Below the pieces are notes generated by a model that made no database searches, was not told the origin of the DNA, and worked only from the letters and a program-made list of their open reading frames with translations. From positions 300,248-364,247 of IMG/VR virus record IMGVR_UViG_3300043418_000114: a stretch of DNA of 64,000 nt; one strand, written 5' to 3'. Below are positions 32,296-61,066 of this stretch, one piece after another. The position numbers were made by a program, and so were the translations under genes. Within the stretch, counting starts at the first letter, position 1, and the number at the start of each line of letters is the position of its first letter.

Positions 32296-32331
32296 CTTAG
32301 TGTCCGTGTAAATAGCTACATGGACACTAAG
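32296..32331 (+). promoter_or_regulatory. 15-bp RNA hairpin covering the start codon, with a late promoter box (TAAATA) at its loop
   Basis: CTTAGTGTCCGTGTA-AATAGC-TACATGGACACTAAG: the arms pair with one G-U; ATG 32320 is in the 3' arm; TAAATA is at 32309-32314. Confidence 0.7.
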
Positions 32332-32625
32332 ACTCTCATTTCCGAAGCCAAAGCCCGCTTCAATCATAATTCAGCAAAAGCATACCTCAAAGACAAATAC
32401 GACAGCAAGTTAATTGTTGCCGAGCAAGGTGGTTTATGGAAAGCCACTCCAGAACTAATTGGGTATCTCGCGTCCAACACGGACGAGCATGTCGTTTTAA
32501 TTGACAATTTTGAAAACCCAGTCTTTGTCAATCGAGTATCATTACTAGAAGTGTTGAACAAGACATACAACGATACCATGCAACTATGGTACAGTGAATG
32601 GAAAGAGTTGGAAAGCAAAAGATGA
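32320..32625 (+). CDS. Hypothetical protein, first gene of the tailoring cluster
   Basis: 101-aa ORF with an ATGA overlap into the next gene. Confidence 0.7.
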   Translation: MDTKTLISEAKARFNHNSAKAYLKDKYDSKLIVAEQGGLWKATPELIGYLASNTDEHVVLIDNFENPVFVNRVSLLEVLNKTYNDTMQLWYSEWKELESKR

Positions 32626-33428
32626 GCAAGGGCGTATTGCTATTCGCATTCAATTCTCCCAAATACAACTACTATGAAATGGCAGTTGCGACTGCAAAGC
32701 GAATCAATCATTTTTTGGGATTACCAGTAACAATCGTTACTGATGAAACCTCTTTGCCTGAGAGAATCACGTATGAATTTGACAATGTAATATTGGCAGA
32801 TGCTGATGCGTCAAATGTACGTGATTGGGGTATTTGGATCAACAAAGGTAGATATCGTGCATACGCATTGAGTCCATACGATGAAACTATCTTACTTGAT
32901 ACTGACTACATGGTAAACTCTGACAAACTATTAGCTTTATTCAATCTACCTACTGACTTTGCTTGTCATGATAATGTGAATTTCTTGATGCATCCAAACT
33001 TACCACAGGAAGTATTGAGTTCTTATAGTTTTAAGACCTTATGGGCAACAGTGGTTTACTTTAAGAAAACCGAACGAGCAAAGCAAATCTTTGATTGCTT
33101 GGAAATGGTTCAGAAAAACTTCGAACATTATTCCATGATTCATAGCTTTATCAGTGGCACATTCAGAAATGATTATGCACTAACATTGGCACTACGTATC
33201 GTGAATGGTCATACCTATCCAAAGGCAGATATCATCCCTTGGAACTTAGTTCACGTTGGCAAGAATACTCAAGTATATCGTAACACAGACGATCCACTAA
33301 ACACAGAATACACAGTTATGTTTGATAATTGGAATCGTGGCAAGATTCGCAAAGAATATATGACAGTGAAAGACATGGACTTTCATATGATGGTCAAAGA
33401 AAACTTCTTGGAGCTAATCAATGACTAA
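32622..33428 (+). CDS. GT-A-fold glycosyltransferase-like protein
   Basis: SPYDETILLDTDY (DxD) motif; the start is set at the ATGA overlap (MSKGVLLFA). Confidence 0.6.
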   Translation: MSKGVLLFAFNSPKYNYYEMAVATAKRINHFLGLPVTIVTDETSLPERITYEFDNVILADADASNVRDWGIWINKGRYRAYALSPYDETILLDTDYMVNSDKLLALFNLPTDFACHDNVNFLMHPNLPQEVLSSYSFKTLWATVVYFKKTERAKQIFDCLEMVQKNFEHYSMIHSFISGTFRNDYALTLALRIVNGHTYPKADIIPWNLVHVGKNTQVYRNTDDPLNTEYTVMFDNWNRGKIRKEYMTVKDMDFHMMVKENFLELIND

Positions 33429-34158
33429 AGGATTTGTTATTATGGCACAAGGTGACGTATACGTAAAGTGCGCCACTACCTTAAAGAACAGCATACTCAA
33501 AGTGATGCCATCTGCCAATATTACAATTATCACCACAGACATGTTGCCTCATGGCGATCTTGGTGGCTTCCACAATGATTGGCAAGTATATGAGTGCAGT
33601 CCTTACGACGAGACTATCAAGCTGGAGGCAGACATGATCATACCTCGGAACATTGATCATTGGTGGGATATTCTGTCACAGAAAGATATTGTAGTCTCGT
33701 CAACTATTCGCAACTTCATGGGTGAGATTTCAGACATTAGAGCATATCGCAAATTCATTGACGATAATAGTCTTCCAGACGTATACAATGCCATTACGTA
33801 CTTTAAAAAGTCAGATACTGCAAAGCAGTTCTTTGAAATTGTGCGTGATGTATTTGAGAACTGGCAAGATTATAAAGCTATTCTCAAGTGTAACCCACAA
33901 GAGGATGCAAGCACTGATTGGGTATATGCAATTGCATGCCTTATCATGAAACCAGAAAATACAACGATGCCTGGATTTACTGAAATGAGTATGATCCACA
34001 TGAAACAGTTCATTAATGGCATGCCAACCGAAGATTGGACTGATACGCTAGTTTATGAAATACTACCAGATGTTGTCAGAGTAAATACAGTTCCTCAGTT
34101 GTATCCATTTCACTATCATGTGAAAGACTTTTCTGATAAACTATTGAGAGTTGTATGA
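33421..34158 (+). CDS. GT-A-like protein, paralog of the upstream gene
   Basis: SPYDETIKLEADM (ExD variant); shares the YFKK....KQ.F motif with the upstream gene. Confidence 0.55.
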   Translation: MTKGFVIMAQGDVYVKCATTLKNSILKVMPSANITIITTDMLPHGDLGGFHNDWQVYECSPYDETIKLEADMIIPRNIDHWWDILSQKDIVVSSTIRNFMGEISDIRAYRKFIDDNSLPDVYNAITYFKKSDTAKQFFEIVRDVFENWQDYKAILKCNPQEDASTDWVYAIACLIMKPENTTMPGFTEMSMIHMKQFINGMPTEDWTDTLVYEILPDVVRVNTVPQLYPFHYHVKDFSDKLLRVV

Positions 34159-34499
34159 CAGAAAATAATGATGATTTTGTAATTATTTGGGAAGCTCCCG
34201 TTATCGTTCCGCCTGTGTTTCGTCTATATTATGATGACACAGGCAAAGTACTTTTCTATTCGTGTGAAGAACACGAAGGTAATCACATCGTTATCGACGC
34301 ACAGACTTATGCAGAAGCAAGACCAGACGTTAGAGTAATAGATGGTAAAATTTCTACGGTACCTAGACACATGGTAATATCAAAATTGATGCCAAGTGAA
34401 ACAGGTACAAAGTGTGCTAGTGAAGACATGAGTATTATCGTCGATGATGATTATGAAGGTACAACTGCACATTGGAAATTAAACATTTATGAACTATGA
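34155..34499 (+). CDS. Hypothetical protein
   Basis: 114-aa ORF overlapping both neighbours. Confidence 0.65.
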   Translation: MTENNDDFVIIWEAPVIVPPVFRLYYDDTGKVLFYSCEEHEGNHIVIDAQTYAEARPDVRVIDGKISTVPRHMVISKLMPSETGTKCASEDMSIIVDDDYEGTTAHWKLNIYEL

Positions 34500-35445
34500 A
34501 AATATTATTGATGTTGCAGACTTGGATTGCATCTATCTCAGCTATGATGAACCGCAAAAAGAAGAATTTTGGCTCAAGATTAAGAACATGGTACCTTGGG
34601 CCAAACGTGTTGACGGTGTTAAGGGTAGTGACGCGGCTCACAAGGCTGCCGGGGAAGCATCAGACACCGAACGATTTATTCTAATCGACGGGGATAATAT
34701 GCCAAATGAAGATTTCTTCAATATCCAATTAGACTTCACTGGCAAAGACGAAACATTTAAACAAGCACAGTTTAGATGGAAAGCTATCAACGCTATTAAT
34801 GGATTACGTTATGGCAACGGTGGCATGAGTAGTTGGACAAAAGAATATGTTGCCAACATGAAGACTCATGAACATCAAACAGACGGTGATATCTCACGTG
34901 TTGCTGACTTCTGCATGGATAGCAAAGATAGCCTCTATTGGGCGATGTGGGATTGCTATTCTACTACTTACCCCAACATGACTCCGTTTCAAGCGTGGAG
35001 AGCTGGATTCCGTGAAGGTGTCAAGATGGTTTTAGACAAAGGCGCAGTGCCACCAATTGAAACATTCAAAGAAAGTCTATCAACACGCAATCTAGACAAC
35101 TTGACTATTTGGCATAACGTTGGTACAGACGTTGAGAATGGTATCTGGGCAATATATGGCGCCAGAATGGGCACGTTCTACACGCTTTTGCTAGATAATT
35201 GGGACCACAAGGACGTACAATGGTTTGATAACTATCCAGTCATGTGGGAAACAATCAAAGATTTAGATCCAGTAGCAGAGAGTGATGGCATTGGTCATCA
35301 CCTATCAACTAAGCTAGGTCTACCAATTTGCACATTGAGTCCAGAACAAAGCAAGTTCTTCAAGCGCCACTACGGCGCAGACAAATACAATCGCGGACCA
35401 CTCGTCACTGAGATGGAAGTAGTTCGTCAAATTCAAGGATGGTAA
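34489..35445 (+). CDS. Glycosyltransferase-like protein (GT-A type)
   Basis: YLSYDEP, RVDGVKG..AAH, FILIDGDN (DxD), N..NGL.YG and AWRAGFRE motifs; paralogous to the C-terminus of 57362-61066. Confidence 0.55.
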   Translation: MNYENIIDVADLDCIYLSYDEPQKEEFWLKIKNMVPWAKRVDGVKGSDAAHKAAGEASDTERFILIDGDNMPNEDFFNIQLDFTGKDETFKQAQFRWKAINAINGLRYGNGGMSSWTKEYVANMKTHEHQTDGDISRVADFCMDSKDSLYWAMWDCYSTTYPNMTPFQAWRAGFREGVKMVLDKGAVPPIETFKESLSTRNLDNLTIWHNVGTDVENGIWAIYGARMGTFYTLLLDNWDHKDVQWFDNYPVMWETIKDLDPVAESDGIGHHLSTKLGLPICTLSPEQSKFFKRHYGADKYNRGPLVTEMEVVRQIQGW

Positions 35446-36848
35446 TGAGCGAGAACTACGAACAAAAACGAATCAAAGACATTAAGATCAAAATCGAAAA
35501 CGAAGTTGGTCCTACGTTTTGTCTTGCCAAGTGGCATCATGTGACTATGTACTTGCAGAGTGGCGAGACACATAGTTGCTATCACCCGCGTCCTCACAAG
35601 ATTCCAATTCACGAGATTAAAGAGAACCCATCTGCATTGCACAATACGCAAGAAAAGAAGATGGAGCGTAAACTCATGCTCGAAGGTGGCAAGCCTGAAG
35701 GCTGTCAATACTGTTGGAACATCGAAGCAATGGGTCCTGATTATATCAGCGATAGACACATTCGCAACGCTAGTATCTTCACAGAAGAAAGATACAATCA
35801 AACTAAGAACAGTTGGACAGTTGACGTTAATCCAGAATACCTAGAAATCAATTTCGGCAACGAATGTAATTTCAAGTGTGGCTATTGTCATCCAAAATAC
35901 AGCACAAGTTTCTACAACGAGATTAAGCAAAATGGACCTGTAACCAGTGTCAAGAATCATCGTTGTGATATTGACTGGATGACACTGTATCAGCGTGAAG
36001 ACGAAAACCCATATGTTGACGCATTCTGGGAATGGTGGCCTGAACTACGCAAGACTCTAAACATCATGCGTGTAACAGGTGGCGAACCAACGATGCACAA
36101 GAGTACATGGACTCTGTTAAATAAGATTGCAGAGGATCCCATGCCTGAGTTGGAGTTGAATGTCAACAGCAACTTGGGAACAAAAACAGCGTTAGTTGAA
36201 AAGCTAGCTGATAGCGTTAAAACTCTGTGCGATGAAAAGAAAATCCGCGCCTTTAAACTCTTTACTAGCTTAGACACATGGGGTCCTCGTGCTGAATATA
36301 TTCGCACAGGTCTAGACTTGGAGTTGTGGGAAAAGAACTTTCACACATACCTAACTCGCACTGATAGTCCAATCACGTTCATGATTACGTTCAATATTTT
36401 CAGTGTAACAACTTTCAAGTCATTCTTAGAGAAGTTCATTGAATGGCGTAAGATTTATGGCTGGTACGACGATCCAGTTAACCCACAACATCGTGTACGT
36501 TTTGACACACCATACTTGCGTGAACCACTGCAATATGATATGAACATTCTTCCTAAAGAGGAATTCATGCCATACATGCATGAAGCACTTGAGTACATGA
36601 AAGCCAACACTGACGACAAACGAAGCGATGCATTCAGTACAATGGAATATGAAAAGTTCAAGCGTGTTGTTGACTACATGGCAGAGACAGTGTATCCAGA
36701 AGAAAAGCTAATTGAAGGTCGCAGGGACTTCTACAACTGGTTCAACGAATTAGATGAACGCAGAGACACGGACATGCTATCCATTTTCCCAGAGTACATG
36801 AACTTCTATCGTGTGTGCCAAGAAGTAAACAGGCTTAATCCTAAATGA
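35445..36848 (+). CDS. Radical SAM protein with N-terminal twitch/SPASM-like Cys motif
   Basis: CNFKCGYC, TGGEPT, and N-terminal FCLAKW...SCYH...CQYC. Confidence 0.85.
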   Translation: MSENYEQKRIKDIKIKIENEVGPTFCLAKWHHVTMYLQSGETHSCYHPRPHKIPIHEIKENPSALHNTQEKKMERKLMLEGGKPEGCQYCWNIEAMGPDYISDRHIRNASIFTEERYNQTKNSWTVDVNPEYLEINFGNECNFKCGYCHPKYSTSFYNEIKQNGPVTSVKNHRCDIDWMTLYQREDENPYVDAFWEWWPELRKTLNIMRVTGGEPTMHKSTWTLLNKIAEDPMPELELNVNSNLGTKTALVEKLADSVKTLCDEKKIRAFKLFTSLDTWGPRAEYIRTGLDLELWEKNFHTYLTRTDSPITFMITFNIFSVTTFKSFLEKFIEWRKIYGWYDDPVNPQHRVRFDTPYLREPLQYDMNILPKEEFMPYMHEALEYMKANTDDKRSDAFSTMEYEKFKRVVDYMAETVYPEEKLIEGRRDFYNWFNELDERRDTDMLSIFPEYMNFYRVCQEVNRLNPK

Positions 36849-38116
36849 GTTCACCATTCTTTAAAAAGTACTTGCTAGAAAAAAGCGATACCTTTTGTAT
36901 GGCTCCATGGACGCACATTCACACTACACCAACTGGTGTAGTTACTCCTTGTTGCATTTCAAAATCATGCGGATCACAGATTGGCATGGCTAATGCTAGA
37001 AACGTGTCATTAATGGAAGCAGTCAATTGTAACCAGATGAAGAAACTACGTCTGGACATGCTCAATGGTGTCAAGAATCCTGAGTGCGCCGCCTGTCATT
37101 CACATGAAGAACAGGGTGTTAAGAGTTTTCGAATGAACATGAATTCAGACTTTGCTCACCATTTCGACGAATTGATTGAATACACTAATGTCGATGGATC
37201 ATTGAATGAATTTCAAATGAAATATTTTGATATTCGATTTTCAAATATCTGTAACTTCAAATGCCGAACCTGCAATTCGAGTTTCAGTACTCAATGGGAA
37301 CAGGAAGACCTTAAATCAAAGTTATTTCATGCACGAATTGTTCCTAAGAATGACAATCCAGAGTTCTTGGCTGACGTTATTGGTCAGATTGAACACATGG
37401 AGAAAGCATACTTTGCTGGTGGTGAACCCTTAATCACAGAAGAACATTACATTCTACTAGAGGAAATGATTAAGCAAGGTCGTACAGATATTAAACTGAG
37501 CTATAATACCAATCTAAGTAATTTGAAATTCAAAGACAAAGACCTGCTGGCATTATGGAAAAACTTTGATAACCCAATTTATATTTCTGCAAGCATTGAT
37601 CACTATGGTGAACGTGCTGAGTATATTCGTTCAGGCACAGATTGGGGCAAAGTAGAAGCTAACTTTAAAAAAGCCAAGAAGACACCATACATCAACCTAC
37701 AAATGAACACGGTATTGAGTGTGTTCAATTACTTGACCATTTATGAGTTCTATGAGTATTTGATAGACAAGAAACTCTATACTCCACGAGACGGAACATT
37801 CTCGTTATATAACATGAGTACGCCTCCTCATCTTACGGCACATATCTTGCCATCTGATTTGAAACAAATTGGCATAGAAAAGATGGACAAAACAATAGAA
37901 CTATTCACTGCGAAGAAATTCCAACCAGAACAAATCAACCAGTTGGCTATCACGACACCATGGGTACAGTCACAAGACACCTGGAACGAACATAAGAAAC
38001 TTTTTAAAGAAGAAGTAAAGCGATTAGATAAGATCAGGGGAGAAGACTTTCAGAAAGTTTTTCCTGAATTAGCAGTGCTACTAGATGATGAACGCAAACG
38101 CCTTTGGCCCGTATGA
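36845..38116 (+). CDS. Radical SAM protein with N-terminal twitch/SPASM-like domain
   Basis: FCMAPW...PCC...CAAC, CNFKCRTC and AGGEPL. Confidence 0.88.
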   Translation: MSSPFFKKYLLEKSDTFCMAPWTHIHTTPTGVVTPCCISKSCGSQIGMANARNVSLMEAVNCNQMKKLRLDMLNGVKNPECAACHSHEEQGVKSFRMNMNSDFAHHFDELIEYTNVDGSLNEFQMKYFDIRFSNICNFKCRTCNSSFSTQWEQEDLKSKLFHARIVPKNDNPEFLADVIGQIEHMEKAYFAGGEPLITEEHYILLEEMIKQGRTDIKLSYNTNLSNLKFKDKDLLALWKNFDNPIYISASIDHYGERAEYIRSGTDWGKVEANFKKAKKTPYINLQMNTVLSVFNYLTIYEFYEYLIDKKLYTPRDGTFSLYNMSTPPHLTAHILPSDLKQIGIEKMDKTIELFTAKKFQPEQINQLAITTPWVQSQDTWNEHKKLFKEEVKRLDKIRGEDFQKVFPELAVLLDDERKRLWPV

Positions 38117-39357
38117 AAACAATTCCAATTATAAATAAAGACCATCTGTTGAATGACAGTAAAACATTCTGCATGTTTCCATGGCTACACTTGAACGTAA
38201 CGCCGAAGGGTGATATCTATCCATGTTGTAGCAATGACTATACTCAGCCGTTTGGCAACACAAAACAAACCTCTCTAAAGGATGCATTCAATGATCCAAA
38301 GATGAAAGAATTGCGTTTGGACATGCTAAATGATCGTAAGAATGATATTTGTAAATTCTGCTATCAGCACGAAGAAGCAGGCCCTCATTCATTCAGAAAC
38401 TATAGCAAAGAACACTTTGCAAAGCACTTCGATGAAACAGTTCCAACTACACTAGAAGATGGCTCAGTTCCTGAGTTCAAGATGCACTATTTTGATATTC
38501 GATTTAGCAACATCTGCAACTTCAAATGCCGAACATGTGGAAGCGAGTTTAGTAGTCAATGGGGCGCAGAAATGCGAGCCAATCATGATCCAAAACATCC
38601 AATCGTGATTCATGCCGATGAACAAGGCAATCTATTACAGGAAGTATTGGATCAAGTTGAACATATTGACTTGGCCTACTTTGCAGGCGGGGAACCTACA
38701 CTAACCGAAGAGCATTACATTATGCTTGAGGAAATGATTCGTAAAGGCCGCACTGACATTACTCTTAGATACAACACTAATGCTAGTAATATCAAGTTCA
38801 AGGACTATGACCTACTAGACATGTGGAAACACTTTAAAAAGATCGAATTGAGTTGTTCAGTTGATCATTATGGTGAACGTGCTGAGTGGCTACGATCTGG
38901 CACAGATTGGGGTGTAGTTGAATCCAACCTACTCAAATTTAGAGAATTAGATTATGTGTCATTCCAAATGAACACTGTATTCAGCATCTTCAATTATAGC
39001 ACAATTGGAGAGTTCTATCAGTATTTGAAAGATAAAGGAATTGTACGCAGGGAAGACTGGTATCATAGTCTTTATCTTGCAGTTCACCCTAGTTACTACA
39101 GCGCCAAGAGTTTGCCAAAGGAACTAAAACTAGATGCGGCAAGTAAAGCACTAGCATGGGCAAAATCAAATGAAGGCGATGGCACGAGTCTATCAAGATT
39201 AATCACTGATGCTGTTAATTTCGCGGGTGATAGTGATACATGGAATGAGAATAAGCCTATTTTCTTGCAACACACTGATAGTATTGATAGAATTAGAAAG
39301 GAAAGTTTCTGGAAAACTTTTCCCGAGTTAAATAAATTGCGTGATTTGACGGAGTAA
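38113..39357 (+). CDS. Radical SAM protein with N-terminal twitch/SPASM-like domain
   Basis: FCMFPW...PCC...CKFC, CNFKCRTC and AGGEPT; close paralog of the upstream gene; ATGA overlap. Confidence 0.88.
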   Translation: MKTIPIINKDHLLNDSKTFCMFPWLHLNVTPKGDIYPCCSNDYTQPFGNTKQTSLKDAFNDPKMKELRLDMLNDRKNDICKFCYQHEEAGPHSFRNYSKEHFAKHFDETVPTTLEDGSVPEFKMHYFDIRFSNICNFKCRTCGSEFSSQWGAEMRANHDPKHPIVIHADEQGNLLQEVLDQVEHIDLAYFAGGEPTLTEEHYIMLEEMIRKGRTDITLRYNTNASNIKFKDYDLLDMWKHFKKIELSCSVDHYGERAEWLRSGTDWGVVESNLLKFRELDYVSFQMNTVFSIFNYSTIGEFYQYLKDKGIVRREDWYHSLYLAVHPSYYSAKSLPKELKLDAASKALAWAKSNEGDGTSLSRLITDAVNFAGDSDTWNENKPIFLQHTDSIDRIRKESFWKTFPELNKLRDLTE

Positions 39358-39358
39358 T

Positions 39359-40630: not shown

Positions 40631-41586
40631 TAGCGATTGAGGCTCCACAGCCCTATCTAGCAGTTACATGGCAAGTTAATAACTACTGTAACTTCAAATG
40701 CAGTTATTGCAATCCTGGTAATTGGGGTGGTACTGATATCAATGATGGTAACTTAGACCTGTACATCAGCAATCTAGAAATCATCATTAACAAATACAAA
40801 GCCGCAGGGTATAAAAACTTCAAGTTCTTTTTCTCTGGTGGTGAGCCTACCGCATGGAAGAACTTCATTCCAATTTGTGAATGGATTTACGAAAAGCTAC
40901 CACGTGCAACTCTTGCAGTAAACACTAACTTGAGTCGTCCATTGGCATGGTGGCAAAAGCATTACCATCTATTCGATGACGTAGTTGCTAGCTTCCACGT
41001 AGAGTTTTCTGACAAGAAACGCTATGAAGAAAATTCTCTTTTCTTGTGTGATAAAGTAAACTACTTGTCAACCAAAATGTTGATGCATGAGGAACGTTTC
41101 TGGGAAGTCGTAGAGTATGGCAACTATCTAAAGACTGTGATGCCAAACTACTTCTTAGAATGGACTCCGTTATTTGATGAAATGTCAGTCAATGCTGGTC
41201 CTTGGCACTACAAAGACCCTGCTAAAGAACAATGGCTACGTGAGCATACAACTGAAATTCAGCAGACTAAGCGCAAGCCAATGAAGCGAACAACCCTAAC
41301 TGTTAGCTACAACAAATATGACGATGATAGCACAGAAGTATGTAACTCAAATGAGGTCATTGTTGCAGGTAACAACTTCTTTAGTGGCTGGAACTGCAAC
41401 GTTGGTGACGCTATCTTTATCAATCCAGTCGGCGAAATGAGTCTGGCAAGTTGTGGCATGGGCGGCTATGTTGGTCATATTCTAACTGACATTAATCGAG
41501 TAGGTCCAAAACAAATTGTCTGTGAGAAAGAACATTGTCACTGTGGCACAGATATCATTATTCCTAAGTTTATGGATACCGAATAA
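40615..41586 (+). CDS. Radical SAM protein with C-terminal auxiliary Cys cluster
   Basis: CNFKCSYC, SGGEPT, and C-terminal GWNC...SC...C..EHCHC. Confidence 0.85.
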   Translation: MGKKLIAIEAPQPYLAVTWQVNNYCNFKCSYCNPGNWGGTDINDGNLDLYISNLEIIINKYKAAGYKNFKFFFSGGEPTAWKNFIPICEWIYEKLPRATLAVNTNLSRPLAWWQKHYHLFDDVVASFHVEFSDKKRYEENSLFLCDKVNYLSTKMLMHEERFWEVVEYGNYLKTVMPNYFLEWTPLFDEMSVNAGPWHYKDPAKEQWLREHTTEIQQTKRKPMKRTTLTVSYNKYDDDSTEVCNSNEVIVAGNNFFSGWNCNVGDAIFINPVGEMSLASCGMGGYVGHILTDINRVGPKQIVCEKEHCHCGTDIIIPKFMDTE

Positions 41587-54279: not shown

Positions 54280-55028
54280 AGAAAAAGATATTTTTAATAG
54301 CTGGTTGCAGTCACGCCGCTGGCAGTGAGATAGATGGCACAGAAGATAGTGAGTACAATCGTCATCATTGTTTTGGTAGCGTACTAGCAAACAGATTGGG
54401 ATATTATCCAATCAACTTAGCGATTGCAGGTAACTCAAATAGCGGTATAGCTAGAAGTGTATTGAAATGGTTTGAAGCAAACTATAATCCAGATGAAATG
54501 GAAGTGTTTGTGTCAATTACATGGACAGACAGTTCTAGATTCGAAGCTCCTGTAGAGCGTCCAGTCAATCTACCTGAGCCTATATGTGCAAATTGGGTAG
54601 ATATTACAGCTAGAAGTTTTTATAGAATAACTATGGGTTATAAAGGTTGTGATGCTATTCCAGGTGAAGTCGAAATGACCAAACGCATTCATCGATTTGT
54701 CGCCGAGAATGAACGATTTATGGAAATACTTTCCATGAACTATGTGTTACAAATGCAATACTTCTTGAATTCCAAAAACGTCAAGTATGTTATGTCTAAT
54801 AGTATGCCAATGTATTATGGCAATCACGAGCATCTTGGTTTCTATATGAGTTTGGTAGACGCAACTAAATATTATGGATTGTATAACACAAACGAGGCAT
54901 TCTTTCTTAAATACCAACAAGAAGGATATGTAAACAAAAAGGCAAAGTATTGGCATCATGACGAAACCCCGCATGAGCTATTTGCGGATGAGTTATACAA
55001 TTTTATCGAGAACAACAAATGTTTATAA
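54276..55028 (+). CDS. SGNH/GDSL-like protein
   Basis: AGCSHAAG, NLAIAGNSN and C-terminal YWHHDE. Confidence 0.55.
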   Translation: MKKKIFLIAGCSHAAGSEIDGTEDSEYNRHHCFGSVLANRLGYYPINLAIAGNSNSGIARSVLKWFEANYNPDEMEVFVSITWTDSSRFEAPVERPVNLPEPICANWVDITARSFYRITMGYKGCDAIPGEVEMTKRIHRFVAENERFMEILSMNYVLQMQYFLNSKNVKYVMSNSMPMYYGNHEHLGFYMSLVDATKYYGLYNTNEAFFLKYQQEGYVNKKAKYWHHDETPHELFADELYNFIENNKCL

Positions 55029-55117
55029 TCAACTTTTTCAAGAACTTAGTGCGAGAATACAAGTATCGCAAACGCATTAAAGAATTACGCAAACGAGATC
55101 CATTCATCTACAAATGA
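55019..55117 (+). CDS. 32-aa basic peptide (MFIINFFKNLVREYKYRKRIKELRKRDPFIYK), absent from the ORF track
   Basis: Fills the gap exactly; overlaps the upstream gene and is ATGA-coupled to the carbamoyltransferase. Confidence 0.7.
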   Translation: MFIINFFKNLVREYKYRKRIKELRKRDPFIYK

Positions 55118-56592
55118 AATATCTAGGAATCTCAGCAGGCTTTCATGATGCCGCGGTTAGCGTCACCGATGATAATGGCAATATCTTATTTGCAGGTCAT
55201 AGTGAACGCTACAGCAAAATCAAACATGACAAGAATCTATGTCCTGGTATCATCCAGGATGCATTGTCGTATATAGGCAATGAAGACTACGAAGTTCATT
55301 ATTATGAGCGTCCTTGGCTAAAAACACTACGTCAAATTCGTTCTGGAGAACCACTTACTAGTATTTTTGCTAGTAATATCATTGGCAAAGACATTCATAG
55401 AATGCTAGGTCTAAGAAAGATTCACACTCATAATCACCATTTGTCACATGTTGCGTCTGGTTTTCAAACTAGCCCATTTGAAGATGCTACGGTGGTCGTG
55501 ATTGACGCTATTGGTGAGTTTGATACTGTCACAATTTGGGATGCACGTTACGAGAACGGCAAAGCTAAGTACAAGAAATTGTACAGCGTTAAATACCCAG
55601 ATTCGATAGGCTTGTTCTATTCAGCAATGACAGAACGAGTTGGTCTAAGACCGCTAGACGAAGAATACATTCTAATGGGAATGGCGGCATACGGCAAGCC
55701 TATCTATTACTCCGAAATGCATAGTGAATTGCTTGATTCTAGTTTAGACTTACGTTTTAAAAACAATTTGCATACTGGTGTTGGTAAAGAGTTTCTAGCA
55801 GATGCCGATGACATGGACATTGCGGCCAGTGCCCAAGTATTAGTAGAGCACCTAATTCAAAACGTGATGCACAAAGCTAGTATCTATGGCAAGAGCAAGA
55901 ATCTTGTTTATGGCGGCGGGGTAGCATTGAATTGTTTGGCTAATAGACTGATAGGAAAATACTTTGAAGATATTTGGATTATGCCTAATCCTGGTGACGC
56001 CGGTAATAGCCTCGGGGCTTGCGCTTTGGGCTATGGGAGAAAACTTAACTGGGATAATGCTTATCTCGGTCATGATATTCGAGGCCCTTATCCTAGTAAT
56101 GACATTGTTACTGAGTTACTTACTCGAAAAATTGTGGGAGTGGCATCCGGGAGAGCCGAGTTCGGGCCCCGCGCACTCGGAAACCGTAGCCTCCTTGCGG
56201 ACCCTAGAGGCGGCAAAATTAAGGAGACAGTAAATGAAATTAAACGTAGACAACAATTCAGACCATTTGCGCCAGTCATTCTGGAAGAAATGGTTGATGA
56301 TTACTTTATTATGCCTGACGGTTGGCGTGATAGTAGGTATATGCAAGTCATCGCTACTTGTAGGTATCCTGAGTTATTTCCTGCTATCGTTCATGCTGAC
56401 GGCACTTCTCGTGTCCAGACTGTGCCAAAAGATGGAAGCGGAATCAGAGAACTCCTTGAAAAGTGGTATGTAATGACTGAATGTCCGATTCTACTCAACA
56501 CGAGTTTGAACATTCGAGGCGAGCCTATGGTCAATGACCGCAGTGATGCAGACAGATTTGAAAAACAATACAACGTTAAAGTGATATCATGA
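55114..56592 (+). CDS. O-carbamoyltransferase (NodU/CmcH/TobZ family)
   Basis: LGISAGFHDAAV, ERYS..KHD, HHLSH, DAIGE, MGMAAYG, GGVALNC.AN, EFGPRALGNRSLLADP, FRPFAP, HADGTSRVQTV and LNTSLN. Confidence 0.93.
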   Translation: MKYLGISAGFHDAAVSVTDDNGNILFAGHSERYSKIKHDKNLCPGIIQDALSYIGNEDYEVHYYERPWLKTLRQIRSGEPLTSIFASNIIGKDIHRMLGLRKIHTHNHHLSHVASGFQTSPFEDATVVVIDAIGEFDTVTIWDARYENGKAKYKKLYSVKYPDSIGLFYSAMTERVGLRPLDEEYILMGMAAYGKPIYYSEMHSELLDSSLDLRFKNNLHTGVGKEFLADADDMDIAASAQVLVEHLIQNVMHKASIYGKSKNLVYGGGVALNCLANRLIGKYFEDIWIMPNPGDAGNSLGACALGYGRKLNWDNAYLGHDIRGPYPSNDIVTELLTRKIVGVASGRAEFGPRALGNRSLLADPRGGKIKETVNEIKRRQQFRPFAPVILEEMVDDYFIMPDGWRDSRYMQVIATCRYPELFPAIVHADGTSRVQTVPKDGSGIRELLEKWYVMTECPILLNTSLNIRGEPMVNDRSDADRFEKQYNVKVIS

Positions 56593-57356
56593 TGAATGAT
56601 ACTATAGTCGTATGTGGCGATAGTTTTATGTCTCCTGTTATTGGTAAATATGCAAATACACACTTTTCAGAACTACTAGCAAAAAAACTAGGGTATGAAT
56701 TAGTTTGCCTATCACGTGGCGGCGCAAGCAATGGTGCTATATGCCTACAGATAACAGAGGCCATTAAATTAAAGCCAAGTCTGATTTTATATGGCATTAC
56801 ATCATCGGACAGAATAGAAGTCAATGCCACTAGTGATCCATATCATTCGTTGAATCGTCCAATAGACATTCGTGATGTAATATATTCACATTCAAGTAGT
56901 CTTAGTTCACGGGACAACTCACTCAATATCACTGCAACATTAATTAGTGATACGTTACTTCCAATGTTAGATACAGCACATCCATCAAATATCAAAACAG
57001 CTTATGCTAGTGTAAAGGATATTGATATGAAAGCAGATGCAATCAAACAGTGGTTTACTCATATGTATCATGCGGAATGGAAACGACAGCAGGATTCTTG
57101 GATGTTATACGCTGTTGTACATTTATTGCATTCTAGTGGAATTCCATATGTAAAAGTTCATGATTTGATGCAAGATACTGTGCCTACACCAGAGTGGTCG
57201 ACCGTACCAGGCGTGGTCGTAGATAACGAATTGTTTCCTGTAATATATGATCCTAGTCCTGATGCACCAATGTATCACACATCACCCGAATCGCAATTAA
57301 TAATCCTAGAAAAGATTGAGAAAATCTTAGCTGACACCTATAACATTCATAAGTAA
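56589..57356 (+). CDS. SGNH/GDSL-like protein
   Basis: CGDSF, RGGASN and C-terminal MYHT. Confidence 0.5.
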   Translation: MMNDTIVVCGDSFMSPVIGKYANTHFSELLAKKLGYELVCLSRGGASNGAICLQITEAIKLKPSLILYGITSSDRIEVNATSDPYHSLNRPIDIRDVIYSHSSSLSSRDNSLNITATLISDTLLPMLDTAHPSNIKTAYASVKDIDMKADAIKQWFTHMYHAEWKRQQDSWMLYAVVHLLHSSGIPYVKVHDLMQDTVPTPEWSTVPGVVVDNELFPVIYDPSPDAPMYHTSPESQLIILEKIEKILADTYNIHK

Positions 57357-57361
57357 CATAT

Positions 57362-60300
57362 ATGCTAAGAGATGTATTTTATTATGGGAAGAAACCTAAC
57401 GTTCATCCCAGAGAAAAGTTTGCAATAAATTTAGATGATGCCAAGCGGCAATCATCCACTGAACACTTCTGGATCATAAACGAGTTTTGTGACTATAAGG
57501 GATTTGACTGGGACTTTGATTTTGAATTCTTGCCTGACGAAGATGTGTGGGCAGAAGAACACAATAACGTATGGCCAAGTGTACATCAAAAAGATAGTGG
57601 CACGTGGCTATGCAACACTGATAACAACGAAGCATTGACAATTTATCGTGCCGATGTTGAACCACTAAAGCGTAAAAAAGAAGCATTCGATCACTGGGTA
57701 GTTAACTATGCTATCACAGATGGGTTTGATTTTTCATGGCATCATGACCCGTCAGATCCACCATTCATTTATGTTTGGGGTAATCAATTTTACCCTGGGA
57801 CAGTTATGCCAACAGTTGAATATCATGTTGAAGGCGCAACTGAACGCAAATACATGGATTTGTTTGTGCCTACATTAGCACAGAACAAAGATAGATTCGA
57901 AGTACTAGACGATATTGAAGATTTTGATTATAGTTGGATGCCAGATCCAACTAGTCCACCCTACATTTACGTATGGGGCAATCAATGGAACTCAGCAGAA
58001 GATAAAGCGGCTATAAAATATACAGTCGAGGGCGCGACTGAATACAAGTATATGGCTACACGTGCAAAACGTAGAGCTAATATGCAGTATTGGACCGTGC
58101 CGGATAATGTTGATGTTAGTGATTTCGATTTTAGTTGGGAACCTAACCCTCATGATCCACCATTCGTGTATCAATTCGGCACTCAGCACCAACGCACGGG
58201 TGGCCCTGTTTATACTATTCCAGGAGCAACAGAAGTTAAGTACGTTGATGTAATTCATGCAATGGCTCCTGTTGATATGACATATTGGCACGTGCCAGAC
58301 AATCTAAAAATAGTTGACTTCGACTTCTCATGGCATCCAGATGCACTAGACGGGCCATACATTTATGTTTTTGGAACACAATGGGCACTGACTGGTGGTC
58401 CAAAATACGTAGTGCCAGGCGCAGATCAAAAGAAGTACATTGATGCAATCATTGCCACTGTGCCACCAAACCTAGCTAACTGGGAAATTCCTACTGATAT
58501 TGCAGTAGATGAATTTGATTTCTCATGGCATCCATACGAAGATGATGAGCCCTACATCTATCAGTTTGGCACTCAGTGGCAGAAGACTGGCGGCCCACGT
58601 TACGTTACACCTGGTACTGATGAAATGTCTCCCATCAAATATGTAGACACTCGCATTATCAAAGCTAGAAAACTTCCTAAGCGTGATAACTGGACAGTGC
58701 CAGATACCATTGAAGAAGACAGTATTGATTTCTCATGGCATCCTGATGACACTGAACCAGCATTTGAGTATCAGTTTGGTACTCAATGGCAGAAGACAGA
58801 TGGTCCAGTTTACACCGTGCCAGGTGCAACACAATCTAAGTTTGTATCAGTCAACAAAGCACGTATCAAACCTAACATGAGTAATTGGCAATTGCCAGAG
58901 GGACTTGATGCTAAGAAGTTTGACTTTTCATGGCACCCTGACAGCACAGTTCCTGTATATGTTTACCAGTTCGGTACATTACTAGATGATATTCACCTAG
59001 AAGACGGCCCACGTTATGTAACACCTGGCAATGATGGTCATGTTGTGTACATGGAAAACGACGAGATTCTTACTGATGCCATCGAATATCCAAAGTACTA
59101 TATCACAACTACATTAGATGATTTGATTCAGCAACACAAAGATGAAACATTCTGGGCGTTACGTGAAAACATTGATTACGCTGATTTTGATTTTGCATGG
59201 AGACCTACGAAAGAAAACGTCTTCCACATTAACGCATTTGGTTCACCTGATAGCGAATCAACTCAGTCATATCTTGTCAATGGCAAGATGATTCAGCAAG
59301 GTCATTCTCATATCAATTTCATCGAGAATATTAAGCTAGACGAAGAATACTTGGCCAAATTGTTTAAGCCAGTTAGTATGTTCTTTGTTGATCGTGGTAA
59401 CAGTGAAACCCAAGAACGATTTGATAGATTGAAGCTACGTTTCCCTGACATTCAAAAGACTAGATTCTTGAACACATGGGTAGATACAATCAACCGTTGT
59501 ATCAATCGTAGTTCAACTGAATTGTGCTGGATTCTGAACAGCGAACTTGACTATAGCGATTTCAACTTTGAGTACTATCCTAATCCATGGCAAATGAAAA
59601 TGGTCCACGTGTTTGGTACTCAATGGTCTCATTGGGGCACAACGTTTATGGTCAATCGTGATTCGTTTGCAGAAGATACCAAGTACATTAAAGTCATTGA
59701 ACACTTGAGTAACTTGAACTTTGTAAAGAATCGCAGAGCAAAGGCCACTAACGTTCTATATGACGTTATCTACATTGATCATGGCACTACCGATATTACT
59801 CCTGGCACAAACGTAATTGTGTATGAAGATAGCTATCTCACAACGTTCAAAAAGATGTTGGAGAAGTTACCTACAAAGAAAGAACACTATGTTTGGGTTT
59901 GCTCAAGCGTATGTGATTATGCTGACTTTGATTTCACTTACATTTGTGATCCATTTGCACGTGAGCAATTGCACGTATTCCCTAGTGACAAACAAAAGTT
60001 TGGCGATACATTCTTAATCAACGTAAACAAGTTGCGTGAGTTGATTACGGACATGGAGAAACTAGAAGATTACGAAAAGATCAGCTATAACCAGCACCAA
60101 AGAGCAAAGCGATTGCCTGCTCCAACTATAATTACAAAGGAAGATACACATGTCTCTACTATTCACACTGATTTTAATTGGCCTTATGCTACGTTTGTCA
60201 CGGAAGACAACGCCGAAATAGAATCTGTTTACTCAGAACCAATGAGCCTATGGGCACCTGAACACAAGAATATCACAATCACCAGTACCGGCGGCACTCG

Positions 60301-61066
60301 CATTGTTGTACCGCGTGAGGCCAAAGAACATGTTAAGCGTGAATTGTATGATTACCCATACATCATCACCAATAGTAAATTGGCTAAGTCTACACCAATG
60401 GACATTGTATTCTTGTCGAACGGCGAGACAGGAGCAGAGGAAAACTATGAGCATTTGTTGAAAACAACACATGGATTAGCCAATCGTGTTGTTCGAGTCG
60501 ATGGAGTTAAAGGTCGTGTTCAAGCGTATCATGCCGCACTTGAAGCAAGTAACACACCTTGGGCTTTCACAGTCTTTGCGAAGTTAAAAGTCAGTAACAA
60601 ATTTGATTGGAACTGGCAACCAGATAGACTACAGATTCCTAAGCATTATGTATTTCATGCTAAGAATCCGGTGAACGGACTAGTCTATGGTCACCAAGCA
60701 ATGATTGCCTATAACAAGAAACTTACACTTGCCAATCAAGGCAAAGGTCTAGACTTTACAATGGACGATGAACATGAAGTTGTTGAAATTGTCTCAGGTG
60801 TTGCAAACTTTAATACTGATGAATGGTCAACCTGGCGTACTGCATTCCGTGAAGCACTCAAACTACGTGCTAACACAGACGAAGTAAGTAAGAATAGACT
60901 AGAGTTTTGGCTAACAGTTGGGTCAGGTAAGTTCTCTCAGTATAGTATTGATGGAGCATCTGACGCAGTTAAGTACTATGAGGAAGTCAATGGAGATTTT
61001 GAGAAATTGAAGTTGAGTTATGAATGGGAATGGCTACGCGAATTCTATCAGCGCAAGTATAAATAA
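57362..61066 (+). CDS. 1234-aa repeat protein with a C-terminal glycosyltransferase-like domain
   Basis: Seven tandem ~66-aa FDFSWxP repeats; C-terminal DIVFLSNGE..A..N, RVDGVKGR..AYH, NPVNGLVYG and WRTAFRE motifs shared with 34489-35445. Confidence 0.65.
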   Translation: MLRDVFYYGKKPNVHPREKFAINLDDAKRQSSTEHFWIINEFCDYKGFDWDFDFEFLPDEDVWAEEHNNVWPSVHQKDSGTWLCNTDNNEALTIYRADVEPLKRKKEAFDHWVVNYAITDGFDFSWHHDPSDPPFIYVWGNQFYPGTVMPTVEYHVEGATERKYMDLFVPTLAQNKDRFEVLDDIEDFDYSWMPDPTSPPYIYVWGNQWNSAEDKAAIKYTVEGATEYKYMATRAKRRANMQYWTVPDNVDVSDFDFSWEPNPHDPPFVYQFGTQHQRTGGPVYTIPGATEVKYVDVIHAMAPVDMTYWHVPDNLKIVDFDFSWHPDALDGPYIYVFGTQWALTGGPKYVVPGADQKKYIDAIIATVPPNLANWEIPTDIAVDEFDFSWHPYEDDEPYIYQFGTQWQKTGGPRYVTPGTDEMSPIKYVDTRIIKARKLPKRDNWTVPDTIEEDSIDFSWHPDDTEPAFEYQFGTQWQKTDGPVYTVPGATQSKFVSVNKARIKPNMSNWQLPEGLDAKKFDFSWHPDSTVPVYVYQFGTLLDDIHLEDGPRYVTPGNDGHVVYMENDEILTDAIEYPKYYITTTLDDLIQQHKDETFWALRENIDYADFDFAWRPTKENVFHINAFGSPDSESTQSYLVNGKMIQQGHSHINFIENIKLDEEYLAKLFKPVSMFFVDRGNSETQERFDRLKLRFPDIQKTRFLNTWVDTINRCINRSSTELCWILNSELDYSDFNFEYYPNPWQMKMVHVFGTQWSHWGTTFMVNRDSFAEDTKYIKVIEHLSNLNFVKNRRAKATNVLYDVIYIDHGTTDITPGTNVIVYEDSYLTTFKKMLEKLPTKKEHYVWVCSSVCDYADFDFTYICDPFAREQLHVFPSDKQKFGDTFLINVNKLRELITDMEKLEDYEKISYNQHQRAKRLPAPTIITKEDTHVSTIHTDFNWPYATFVTEDNAEIESVYSEPMSLWAPEHKNITITSTGGTRIVVPREAKEHVKRELYDYPYIITNSKLAKSTPMDIVFLSNGETGAEENYEHLLKTTHGLANRVVRVDGVKGRVQAYHAALEASNTPWAFTVFAKLKVSNKFDWNWQPDRLQIPKHYVFHAKNPVNGLVYGHQAMIAYNKKLTLANQGKGLDFTMDDEHEVVEIVSGVANFNTDEWSTWRTAFREALKLRANTDEVSKNRLEFWLTVGSGKFSQYSIDGASDAVKYYEEVNGDFEKLKLSYEWEWLREFYQRKYK
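57695..59070 (+). repeat. Seven tandem ~200-nt coding repeats (W.VP....FDFSWHPD...PYIYQFGTQWQKTGGP.Y.VPGA...KY)
   Basis: Visible in the protein, and in the DNA as recurring tt(c/t)tcatggca and tttggcactcagtggcagaagac-like strings; boundaries are approximate. Confidence 0.85.
61058..61065 (+). promoter_or_regulatory. Perfect T4 late promoter box TATAAATA
   Basis: Exact consensus, 4 nt upstream of ATG 61070. Confidence 0.7.

Follow-up and report, generated by a model that had tools for sequence, protein, structure and literature searches.

What does a giant freshwater phage build with a 29-kb block of sugar-tailoring enzymes placed right after its tail-fibre genes? We analysed a window of 64,000 nucleotides (positions 300,248 to 364,247 of IMG/VR record IMGVR_UViG_3300043418_000114), which is the end of a 364-kb jumbo myovirus genome. 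The block, also carried by hundreds of uncultured relatives, encodes soluble enzymes whose product, never yet seen, most likely coats the virus particle. The initial annotation had proposed about 25 co-oriented, mostly overlapping genes making a heavily decorated virion glycan; its description of the locus was confirmed, whereas its reading of the function was only partly supported.

Gene content of the island

Twenty-four plus-strand ORFs were found between 32320 and 61066 of the window. Most overlap by 4–80 nt, and only four gaps reach 20 nt or more. The ORFs and associated control elements are as follows.

32296..32331 (+), conserved hairpin; the 5' arm lies just upstream of the TAAATA box (32309-32314), the 3' arm is the start codon and codons 2–4 of the first gene, and the box lies in the loop, together with the AGGAG ribosome-binding site in most relatives (the window's shorter loop has no AGGAG).
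32320..32625 (+), 101-aa conserved soluble protein of unknown function, first gene of the island; found in 77/79 related loci at 60–85% identity, no family hit.
32598..33428 (+), 276-aa paralog of the next gene (hhalign 98% to the 33421 family), GT-A-like by motif only (LLFAFNS ... LLDTDY); found in 77/79 loci, no Pfam, NCBIfam, PHROG or PDB hit.
33421..34158 (+), 245-aa paralog of the previous gene (phrog_1903, unknown function), GT-A-like by motif only.
34155..34499 (+), 114-aa conserved protein of unknown function; found in 74/79 loci, no family hit.
34489..35445 (+), 318-aa protein, the most conserved unknown (85% mean column identity), with a putative GT2-like nucleotide-sugar transferase domain (YLSYDEP / VDGVKGSD / ILIDGDN).
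35439..36848 (+), radical SAM with an N-terminal twitch domain (NF033640, 315 bits against a cutoff of 170), divergent paralog; CNFKCGYC at residue 143, 33% identical to RsoM2USA_202.
36845..38116 (+), radical SAM with an N-terminal twitch domain (NF033640, 379 bits); SPASM at residues 18–85 precedes Radical_SAM at 131–284.
38104..39357 (+), radical SAM with an N-terminal twitch domain (NF033640, 374 bits), 48% identical to the previous gene.
39359..40630 (+), radical SAM with an N-terminal twitch domain (NF033640, 371 bits); relatives reach 97% identity.
40615..41586 (+), short radical SAM protein (323 aa) without the N-terminal twitch domain and with a Cys-rich C-terminus; Radical_SAM at 1.9e-5, below the gathering score, CNFKCSYC at residue 25 and GGE at 75, up to 95% identity in relatives.
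41595..41602 (+), GATAAATA box.
41607..42917 (+), predicted GT-B fold glycosyltransferase; extra paralogs occur in relatives.
42914..43894 (+), NAD-dependent sugar epimerase/reductase (extended SDR; epimerase/dehydratase family PF01370, 4e-43); the best model is GDP-L-fucose synthase-like, far below its cutoff (NF047922, 113 bits against 500).
43849..44766 (+), DUF6071-like protein with SGNH-like motifs (GCSWTQG ... DGAHP), hhalign 96% to the DUF6071 family; JGI calls its start at 43891, and it always co-occurs with the next gene (phi 1.0).
44684..46681 (+), B12-binding radical SAM, KedN5-like C-methyltransferase type (Radical_SAM 1.7e-14, B12-binding 1.6e-6; NF033712 at 3e-73, below its cutoff).
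46683..47453 (+), DUF6071-like protein with SGNH-like motifs, hhalign 91–93% to the 43849 and 54276 families.
47450..48631 (+), NDP-sugar 6-dehydrogenase family protein (PF00984 and PF03721; TIGR03026 at 2e-46, 159 bits against a cutoff of 190).
48637..48665 (+), TTGCTT-17 nt-TATAAT sigma-70-like site containing TTAAATA (48650-48656).
48684..50945 (+), B12-binding radical SAM (class B, methyltransferase-like; Radical_SAM 1.9e-19, B12-binding 1.3e-11), conserved in every relative fetched with it; 194 IMG/VR relatives.
50942..51532 (+), 196-aa "mini-DegT" sugar aminotransferase fragment, conserved at this length (PF01041 at 1.1e-17, covering profile positions 164–243 only); 54% identical to the 195-aa ORF305 of cyanophage S-SCSM2R.
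51522..52502 (+), arginine-dependent amidinotransferase of the StrB1 (inosamine-phosphate amidinotransferase) type; 59% identical to S-SCSM2R ORF309.
52495..54279 (+), fusion of an N-terminal cupin/2OG-oxygenase-like domain (about 1–170) with a GT-B-type region (about 291–591).
54276..55028 (+), DUF6071 protein (PF19547, 5.9e-7) with SGNH-like motifs (GCS ... HHxExPH).
55114..56592 (+), NodU/CmcH/TobZ-family O-carbamoyltransferase with both domains (PF16861 at 2.8e-46, PF02543 at 3.6e-37); 44% identical to Ralstonia phage RsoM2USA gp199.
56589..57356 (+), DUF6071-like protein with a classical GDSF block, rare in relatives; hhalign 92% to the DUF6071 family over residues 24–78.
57362..61066 (+), 1234-aa soluble protein of a virus-only family, with 8–10 repeats carrying FDFSW(H/E)P...PYIY-FG-QW and a C-terminal domain (about 1013–1168) homologous to the 34489 protein; no Pfam, PHROG or PDB hit.

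Family models thus confirmed the epimerase, dehydrogenase, aminotransferase and carbamoyltransferase named in the initial annotation, and its seven radical SAM proteins, each with an intact CX3CX2C (four N-terminal-twitch paralogs, one short, and two B12-type). The amidinotransferase was missed by Pfam and NCBIfam, but a family profile hit StrB1 (PDB 1bwd) at 5e-86 and AGAT at 2e-49, as well as HsvA and SxtG, and the invariant GG-FHC motif carries the catalytic Cys.

Other calls were confirmed in part. The proposed 2OG-Fe-like oxygenase is the N-terminal 170 aa of 52495..54279 and rests on a conserved HxD...H pattern, an Atlas structural lead to Asp_Arg_Hydrox, and 33% identity to S-SCSM2R ORF308, which gives a sub-threshold Asp_Arg_Hydrox hit (E 0.023). 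The four SGNH-like proteins are mutually related DUF6071-type proteins (hhalign 91–96%), assigned to SGNH by motif only. Of the four to six proposed GT-like proteins, 41607..42917 is a GT-B by predicted fold (AF2 pLDDT 89, pTM 0.86; Foldseek probability 1.0 to OtsA, VldE, LmbT, SenB, and GT1/GT4 models), and residues 291–591 of 52495..54279 are a GT-B part by homology to that family (hhalign 100%). The 34489 family (1232 representatives) is only weakly linked to GT2, as distant members give sub-threshold Glycos_transf_2 hits on this domain or are fused to GT28/EryCIII-type GT-B domains; its AF2 model was poor (pLDDT 56), and PDB searches by sequence profile and by fold found no significant match. 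The two remaining candidates are GT-A-like by motif only.

Late-type control and conservation

None of the three boxes called late in the initial annotation (32309, 41595, and 48651) is the canonical TATAAATA. The first is GTAAATA (CTAAATA in most relatives), with its TAAATA core present in 63/63 relatives. The second is GATAAATA, the form found before the gp25, gp6 and tail-fibre genes, but it is conserved in only 9/27 relatives. The third, TTAAATA inside the sigma-70-like site, is conserved in 30/60 relatives and also fits a host sigma-70 promoter; a generic scan did not list this site. ATAAATA occurs 11 times in the window, six of these in or beside the roughly 3% of the window that is intergenic. 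The box type of the first gene also precedes the tail-fibre gene in 56/57 relatives.

The hairpin at the first gene comprises a 15-pair stem. In 51 distinct relatives 92% of cells pair, against 22–48% when the partner is slid, with AU-to-GC and UA/AU/GC compensatory changes. As in late-only translation of T4 gene e, it would block the start codon in read-through transcripts but not in transcripts that start at the box. Late control is well supported only for the first gene and not for the whole 29 kb.

The island follows the tail-fibre gene (Peptidase_G2 chaperone domain) and a tail protein with 31% Ser+Thr in 77 of 79 related contigs. It has a fixed core of three GT-A-like proteins, two small proteins, four or five N-terminal-twitch radical SAM enzymes, and one short radical SAM. 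Around it are swappable cassettes: GT-B paralogs; SDR; NDP-sugar dehydrogenase; DUF6071 with a B12-radical SAM; mini-DegT with amidinotransferase and a cupin-GT fusion; and DUF6071 with carbamoyltransferase. None of the 24 proteins has a membrane segment. A freshwater metatranscriptome holds 86% and 68% of the sampled words of two parts of the island, with uneven depth (41 over the tail genes, 3–10 over the first enzymes), which argues for RNA rather than DNA carry-over, although metatranscriptome contigs give no timing.

The statement in the initial annotation that no characterised phage pathway has this enzyme set stands. However, sub-modules had been noticed without function: five radical SAM genes plus an amidinotransferase in Campylobacter phages CP220/CPt10 (PMC2853527), and DegT, radical SAM and inosamine amidinotransferase in cyanophage S-SCSM2R (PMC12801897). 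No phage with the whole island is in culture; S-SCSM2R (amidino cassette) and RsoM2USA (twitch radical SAM, DUF6071 and carbamoyltransferase module) each carry only part of it.

Inferred product and its target

Our preferred reading, to which we give a probability of about 0.45, is a cytoplasmic pathway, switched on late, that builds and heavily decorates a glycan, most likely attached to virion proteins of the tail-fibre apparatus during assembly. The analysis itself establishes the enzyme families (with the GT-A, SGNH and 2OG assignments weak), the conserved placement after the tail-fibre genes, the core and cassettes, and the late-type control element at the first gene; the chemistry, the product, its acceptor on the virion, and late timing beyond the first gene are inferred. 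In this view, the NDP-sugar dehydrogenase and the SDR would supply uronic or deoxy/epimerised sugars, and the twitch radical SAM enzymes would oxidise or epimerise sugar carbons, as BtrN and HygY do. The mini-DegT would turn a keto group into an amine, which the StrB1-like enzyme would convert to a guanidino group using arginine. The B12-radical SAMs would C-methylate, the carbamoyltransferase would O-carbamoylate, the DUF6071 proteins would add or remove acyl groups, and the GT-A-like and GT-B proteins would assemble the chain, while the cupin-GT fusion may hydroxylate an acceptor residue and then glycosylate it.

The absence of membrane segments places the work in the cytoplasm, where virions assemble, and the cassette structure resembles that of glycan loci. 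Virus-encoded virion glycosylation exists in mycobacteriophages and giant viruses (cited in PMC12619734). By contrast, in S-SCSM2R the shared cassette is not next to tail genes, and N-terminal-twitch radical SAM genes in KVP40-type phages and in bacteria sit in unrelated contexts, so their substrate may not be a glycan. The placement, the co-conservation in many relatives, the first-gene control, the solubility of all the proteins, the Ser/Thr-rich neighbour and the presence of the region in a freshwater metatranscriptome support the interpretation in the initial annotation, but no glycan product or acceptor was observed.

The best-surviving alternative, though unlikely, is radical post-translational modification of virion proteins, with or without glycosylation, which does not exclude the main reading. 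The SPASM/twitch and B12-radical SAM enzymes and the cupin hydroxylase would act directly on tail-fibre residues (epimerisation, C-methylation, hydroxylation), as in proteusin/polytheonamide maturation. The best NCBIfam model for 48684..50945 is the RiPP C-methyltransferase subfamily TIGR03975 (3e-30), secondary hits of the twitch enzymes are peptide maturases, the cupin domain has the Asp/Asn-hydroxylase-like lead, and the island lies next to huge Ser/Thr-rich structural proteins. However, all these hits are far below family cutoffs, no RiPP recognition element, leader-type peptide or protease was found, and the NDP-sugar enzymes, amidinotransferase, carbamoyltransferase and glycosyltransferases point to sugar substrates.

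DNA hypermodification, in which a decorated glycan or amino/guanidino group is built on a modified base of the phage genome to evade restriction, is somewhat less likely. The proteins are cytoplasmic and soluble, and phage GTs put mono- and disaccharides on 5hmC (Pyle et al. 2024, cited in PMC12619734). Campylobacter phages with radical SAM plus amidinotransferase modules have unusual DNA, and in KVP40 a twitch radical SAM gene lies beside a QueC-like gene. The late-only control of the first gene and its position in the tail operon fit poorly with a function needed during replication, and within the window, leaving aside the other 300 kb of the genome, there is no base hydroxymethylase, kinase or DpdA-type gene.

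Host-surface remodelling, in which unusual NDP-sugars are installed by the host's own LPS, capsule or S-layer machinery and change receptors or grazing, is doubtful. It is the usual reading of cyanophage "LPS" islands, related cassettes in large T4-like cyanophages are interpreted this way (PMC12801897), and the island is cassette-like and variable, as O-antigen loci are. However, no initiating polyprenyl-phosphate transferase, flippase, polymerase or exporter is present, there is no membrane segment at all, late-type control at the first gene leaves little time before lysis, and the linkage to tail genes is tight.

A free guanidino-, carbamoyl- and methyl-decorated pseudo-oligosaccharide of aminoglycoside type, released at lysis or acting inside the cell, is equally doubtful, as no cyclitol-forming enzyme (2-deoxy-scyllo-inosose synthase or inositol-phosphate synthase), kinase, phosphatase, exporter or resistance gene was recognised by the family searches, six or more GT-like proteins are more than such molecules need, and a late-made antibiotic has no evident benefit to a lytic phage, even though the enzyme set mirrors aminoglycoside pathways in its amidinotransferase (far closer to StrB1, 292 bits, than to AGAT, 172 bits), TobZ-family carbamoyltransferase, GenK/KedN5-type B12-radical SAMs, BtrN-like twitch radical SAMs, DegT/StrS aminotransferase, and a GT-B resembling VldE and LmbT.

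Genomic setting and enzyme content of the island

The window is the last 64 kb of the IMG/VR contig IMGVR_UViG_3300043418_000114 (364,247 bp; window position 1 is contig position 300,248). The same genome occurs in a second JGI record of identical length with a different start point, indicating that it is probably complete and circularly permuted. Megablast of 30 kb of the window against GenBank phages found no match, and the lineage has no cultured close relative. The first 32 kb encode a T4-type baseplate and tail module with gp53-like, gp5-like, gp25-like, and gp6-like proteins, of which the gp6-like protein is about 35% identical to those of Rak2/GAP32/CBB-type 350-kb phages.

Main features of the region. 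Positions are those of the window, and entries with one number give the gene start.
11088-29291, single 6067-aa ORF following the gp6-like baseplate gene
30110-31321, tail fibre with a Peptidase_G2 intramolecular-chaperone end
31332-32282, protein of 31% Ser+Thr
32296-32331, hairpin at the first island gene
32320-61066 (+), the island, 24 mostly overlapping ORFs
32598 and 33421 (+), paralogs, GT-A-like by motif only
34489-35445 (+), best-conserved unknown
35439 (+), N-terminal-twitch radical SAM
40615 (+), short radical SAM
41607-42917 (+), predicted GT-B glycosyltransferase
43849, 46683, 54276, and 56589 (+), DUF6071-type proteins
44684 and 48684 (+), B12-binding radical SAMs
50942-51532 (+), DegT fragment of 196 aa
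51522 (+), StrB1-like amidinotransferase
52495-54279 (+), cupin/2OG-oxygenase-like domain fused to a GT-B-type region
57362-61066 (+), 1234-aa repeat protein

The gene content described in the initial annotation was confirmed in its main components, with some assignments resting on motifs or weak matches as set out below. Seven radical SAM proteins were identified, all with the CX3CX2C cluster motif. Five score above or near the Pfam gathering score of PF04055, whereas 35439 and 40615 fall below it, although 35439 passes NF033640. Four are paralogs whose Cys-rich twitch/SPASM domain is N-terminal to the radical SAM core (NF033640 at 315, 379, 374, and 371 bits against a cutoff of 170), with SPASM at residues 18-86 preceding Radical_SAM at 131 onward and with invariant Cys18, Cys37, Cys81, and Cys84. 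One is a short radical SAM, and two have the B12-binding plus radical SAM architecture of class B methyltransferases. The B12-binding domain of 48684 scores 44.8 bits against a cutoff of 32.1 and that of 44684 scores 28.4 bits, below the cutoff, and every named subfamily hit (KedN5, TIGR03975) is below its own cutoff.

Family models also identified an extended-SDR sugar epimerase/reductase, an NDP-sugar dehydrogenase, a DegT fragment, a DUF6071 protein, and a NodU/CmcH/TobZ-type carbamoyltransferase with both Carbam_trans_N and Carbam_trans_C domains (129 and 158 bits against cutoffs of 24 and 27). The amidinotransferase escaped Pfam and NCBIfam, but a profile of 21 relatives hit the inosamine-phosphate amidinotransferase StrB1 (1bwd) at 5e-86 over 318 of 321 positions, well ahead of AGAT, HsvA, and SxtG. 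The catalytic GG-FHC is invariant, as are C315, H314, H209, and D211. The DegT-type aminotransferase (window 50942-51532; locus L235, 11293-11880) covers only about positions 164-243 of the 360-position profile. It is not a pseudogene, because its length is conserved across lineages, including cyanophage S-SCSM2R (195 aa, 54% identical), and we refer to it as a mini-DegT.

The 41607-42917 protein was modelled confidently (pLDDT 89) as a GT-B glycosyltransferase, with Foldseek probability 1.0 to OtsA, VldE, LmbT, and SenB, though TM is only 0.4 because of domain opening. Residues 291-591 of 52495-54279 are homologous to it (hhalign 100%). The N-terminal 170 residues of the latter protein look like a cupin/2OG oxygenase, but only through a conserved His/Asp pattern (H92 and H124 are invariant, and the window sequence reads H92-V-D94), an indirect ESM Atlas lead from a neighbour cluster rather than from this protein, and a PF05118 hit at E 0.023, below the cutoff, in the homolog ORF308 of S-SCSM2R. 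The window domain itself gave no PF05118 hit.

The four DUF6071-type proteins form one family (hhalign 91-96%). They carry conserved motifs resembling SGNH blocks (I, GxS; II, G; III, GxN; V, DxxH), but their only PDB hits were GDSL-like proteins at E 0.4-0.9, and the DUF6071 profile gave no PDB hit. The family of 34489-35445 has 1232 representatives. Distant members give weak, sub-threshold GT2 hits (PF00535) on the same domain or are fused to GT28/EryCIII-type domains, and the same domain ends the 1234-aa protein. In the window protein itself the GT-A resemblance rests on motifs only; its AF2 model was too poor (pLDDT 56) to be used, and fold searches with it were meaningless apart from unnamed sequence relatives. 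The paralogs 32598 and 33421 (hhalign 98%) had no hit in any library. Profile searches of PDB sequences found nothing for the 34489, 41607, 52495, 32598/33421, DUF6071, and 1234-aa families, and ESM Atlas searches returned virus-only unnamed clusters.

Conservation, late-type control and environmental transcripts

The tail protein upstream of the island has 378 IMG/VR relatives, and in 77 of 79 fetched loci the genes 32320 to 40615 follow in the same order. The radical SAM genes reach 86-95% identity, while the tail protein reaches 73%. The B12-radical SAM at 48684 has 194 relatives; around it the frame is conserved but the content varies. Two cassettes are inherited as units: the DUF6071-like 43849 with the B12-radical SAM 44684 (phi 1.0), and the mini-DegT with the amidinotransferase and the cupin-GT fusion (phi 0.91-0.96). 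Cassettes also move between unrelated phages. Cyanophage S-SCSM2R has the mini-DegT (54% identical), cupin (33%), and amidinotransferase (59%) set among GTs, Ralstonia jumbo phage RsoM2USA has a twitch radical SAM, two DUF6071 proteins, and a carbamoyltransferase in a row, and a marine single-cell viral contig has a carbamoyltransferase next to a twitch radical SAM.

A homolog search with one twitch radical SAM was saturated by close phage relatives. Among the hits was a 4.4-kb contig (P0038) carrying an 88%-identical gene and filed in NCBI under a ‘Candidatus Nanopelagicus’ MAG. It is probably a mis-binned phage fragment, but could hint at a freshwater actinobacterial host (window GC is about 40%). 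Bacterial homologs at 30-37% identity occur in 62 species genomes, mainly Bdellovibrionota, Flavobacteriales, and Saprospiraceae, where they stand alone or in tandem arrays beside two-component, ExbBD, or TPR genes, a context without glycan genes that was uninformative as to their function. One Halobacteriovoraceae MAG contig (locus L167, 10001-17533) carries five tandem or divergent copies, and other predatory Bdellovibrionota and Bacteroidota have one or two, without sugar genes nearby. In KVP40-type vibriophages these genes lie near a QueC-like gene and NAD salvage genes.

The canonical T4 late box TATAAATA is not enriched in the window (2 found against 4.3 expected), but a shorter ATAAATA/TAAATA box is. 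Six of the eleven ATAAATA copies lie in or beside the roughly 3% of the window that is intergenic, preceding the gp25, gp6, tail-fibre, and 41607 genes. The box before the tail-fibre gene is conserved in 56/57 relatives, and the one before 32320 in 63/63. The latter sits in the loop of the hairpin at 32296-32331, whose 5' arm (GTATCCAT in most relatives) lies just upstream of the box and pairs with ATGGATAC, the start codon and the next codons. In 51 distinct relatives 92% of cells pair, against 22-48% for slid controls, with compensatory AU-to-GC changes. A transcript starting at the box would lack the 5' arm, which is the logic of late-only translation of T4 gene e (lysozyme) and soc, in which only transcripts that begin at the box are open for translation; here, however, the box is CTAAATA or GTAAATA rather than TATAAATA. 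This is good evidence that the first gene is a late gene. Of the other two late boxes named in the initial annotation, that at 41595 is conserved in only 9/27 relatives, and that at 48651 lies within a TTGCTT-17-TATAAT site that could serve the host sigma-70. Generic sigma-70 and terminator scans were at chance level.

One freshwater metatranscriptome holds 86% of the sampled words of 29400-35400 and 68% of those of 48684-54600. One contig at depth 41 covers the tail genes up to 32491, and fragments at depth 3-10 cover 32893-35400. The unevenness argues for RNA rather than DNA carry-over, although contigs give neither timing nor transcript ends.

Inferred pathway, alternatives and related systems

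No hydrophobic segment (19-aa Kyte-Doolittle mean of 1.6 or more) was found in any of the 24 proteins, and no lipid-carrier transferase, flippase, polymerase, or exporter was found among their Pfam families, so that the features of a Wzx/Wzy- or ABC-type surface-polysaccharide locus are lacking. The pathway therefore works on cytoplasmic substrates. With BtrN, HygY, StrB1, TobZ, and GenK as precedents, the families imply sugar-nucleotide oxidation and epimerisation, radical oxidation or epimerisation of sugar carbons, transamination, amidino transfer from arginine to give a guanidino group, B12-dependent C-methylation, O-carbamoylation, acyl transfer or removal, and chain assembly by several glycosyltransferases. 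The fusion of a hydroxylase-like domain to a GT-B part suggests hydroxylation followed by glycosylation of an acceptor, as in the collagen lysyl hydroxylase-glycosyltransferases.

The position after the tail fibres, the late-type control, the soluble enzymes, and the cassette variation together favour a decorated glycan on virion proteins, a tentative reading to which we assign a probability of about 0.45. The principal enzyme families, the conserved order behind the tail genes, the cassettes, and the covarying hairpin were established by the analysis itself, whereas the chemistry, the donors and acceptors of the glycosyltransferases, the substrates of the radical SAM enzymes, and the attachment of a glycan to virion proteins are inferred. 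The virion-glycan interpretation of the initial annotation is thus supported only in part.

Direct radical modification of the structural proteins is compatible with the radical SAM and hydroxylase content and may coexist with glycosylation, but appears unlikely as the main explanation. DNA hypermodification, slightly less likely on evidence from the window alone, fits soluble enzymes but not the late control or the tail-operon position. A free aminoglycoside-like metabolite fits the enzyme families strikingly well, but no cyclitol-forming enzyme (2-deoxy-scyllo-inosose synthase or inositol-phosphate synthase), exporter, or resistance gene was recognised among the 24 ORFs by Pfam, NCBIfam, or PHROGs; as five ORFs have no family or motif lead at all, this absence is not absolute, and the reading is doubtful. 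Host-surface remodelling, the usual reading of cyanophage islands (PMC12801897), is equally doubtful, because any membrane component is lacking here.

A more far-reaching possibility, which we consider improbable, is that the phage makes an aminoglycoside-like, guanidino- and carbamoyl-bearing, C-methylated glycan through an array of radical SAM sugar-editing enzymes that act after polymerisation, and displays it on its tail fibres as a cationic ‘chemical adhesin’ or releases it as a bioactive guanidino-glycoside. This would be a new class of viral natural-product chemistry, and the N-terminal-twitch radical SAM family would be a new type of glycan-editing enzyme.

Virus-encoded glycan machinery linked to structural genes is known from mycobacteriophages (Freeman et al. 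2023) and giant viruses (Mimivirus fibril glycans, chlorovirus capsid glycans). There the virus itself encodes glycosyltransferases and sugar-nucleotide enzymes, the genes sit with structural genes, and the work is done in the cytoplasm without the host secretory or lipid-carrier route. Those sets have a few GTs and classical NDP-sugar enzymes, and none is known to have seven radical SAM enzymes, an amidinotransferase, a carbamoyltransferase, or DUF6071 proteins.

Among the ‘LPS/cell-wall’ and ‘antibiotic synthesis’ islands of large T4-like cyanophages (P-SSM2, S-SCSM1, S-SCSM2R; PMC12801897), that of S-SCSM2R shares the mini-DegT, cupin/2OG, and inosamine-type amidinotransferase cassette, flanked by GTs and a radical SAM. 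It lies in a hyperplastic region away from the tail genes and lacks the twitch radical SAM array, the B12-radical SAMs, and the carbamoyltransferase-DUF6071 pair in that locus; its genes were called ‘antibiotic synthesis genes’ without a characterised function. Campylobacter phages CP220/CPt10 (PMC2853527) have a swappable block in a T4-related genome with five radical SAM genes and one amidinotransferase, likewise uncharacterised. The latter is only 25-26% identical to that of the window, the block is much more distant in sequence, no sugar-nucleotide enzymes or GTs were reported in it, and it has no link to tail genes.

Aminoglycoside/aminocyclitol clusters (streptomycin StrB1, tobramycin TobZ, gentamicin GenK, butirosin BtrN) share the enzyme families and probably the chemical steps, namely alcohol to ketone by a twitch radical SAM, transamination, amidino transfer from arginine, O-carbamoylation, and B12-dependent C-methylation. 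The island, which has no recognised cyclitol synthase, kinase, exporter, or resistance gene, is phage-borne, follows the tail genes, and has many GTs, so that membership is not supported and the resemblance is in chemistry. We found no paper describing this lineage or this island; the ‘moraphage’ lineage paper (PMC12619734) describes a different group. The kind of system is known, but the enzyme set is not.

Virus-made glycans on virions are known from only a few systems, which use ordinary sugar chemistry, whereas here a lineage with hundreds of environmental relatives keeps a 29-kb enzyme set at the end of its tail operon, with radical SAM genes more conserved than the tail proteins themselves. 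If the product is a virion glycan, it would be the most elaborately tailored viral glycan known (guanidino, carbamoyl, C-methyl), and would give a function to three orphan groups that recur in jumbo phages, cyanophages, and Campylobacter phages: N-terminal-twitch radical SAMs, DUF6071 proteins, and phage carbamoyltransferases. The cassette structure suggests diversifying selection on the product, which would be relevant to host recognition or to evasion of grazers and host defences, and the late-only hairpin is a clean, testable regulatory element.

Repeat protein and flanking ORFs

The 1234-aa protein (57362-61066) has 8-10 repeats with the signature FDFSW(H/E)P...PYIY-FG-QW...GP-Y-VPGAT-KY, about 65 aa apart at first and then wider. 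No library recognised the repeat, and the family is virus-only. Relatives of the 6067-aa ORF (11088-29291) share about 50% identity over long stretches; Pfam found only a weak FG-GAP repeat and nothing else useful, and the product is probably a giant baseplate or fibre protein.

An unlisted 50-aa ORF (29308-29460) lies in the 168-nt gap before the 29460 gene. It is preceded by GATAAATAAATA, its stop overlaps the next start (TAATG), and it is probably a small late gene. Just after the island, a 188-aa ORF (61163-61729) gives a weak PHROG match (1.3e-6) to a T7-type protein kinase/host-transcription inhibitor family. From 61730 to 64000 the layout changes, with long gaps, two strong terminator-like hairpins (62225-62246, 63113-63134), and an 11/12 sigma-70-like site (63121-63149), suggesting the end of the late structural operon and the start of differently regulated small genes.
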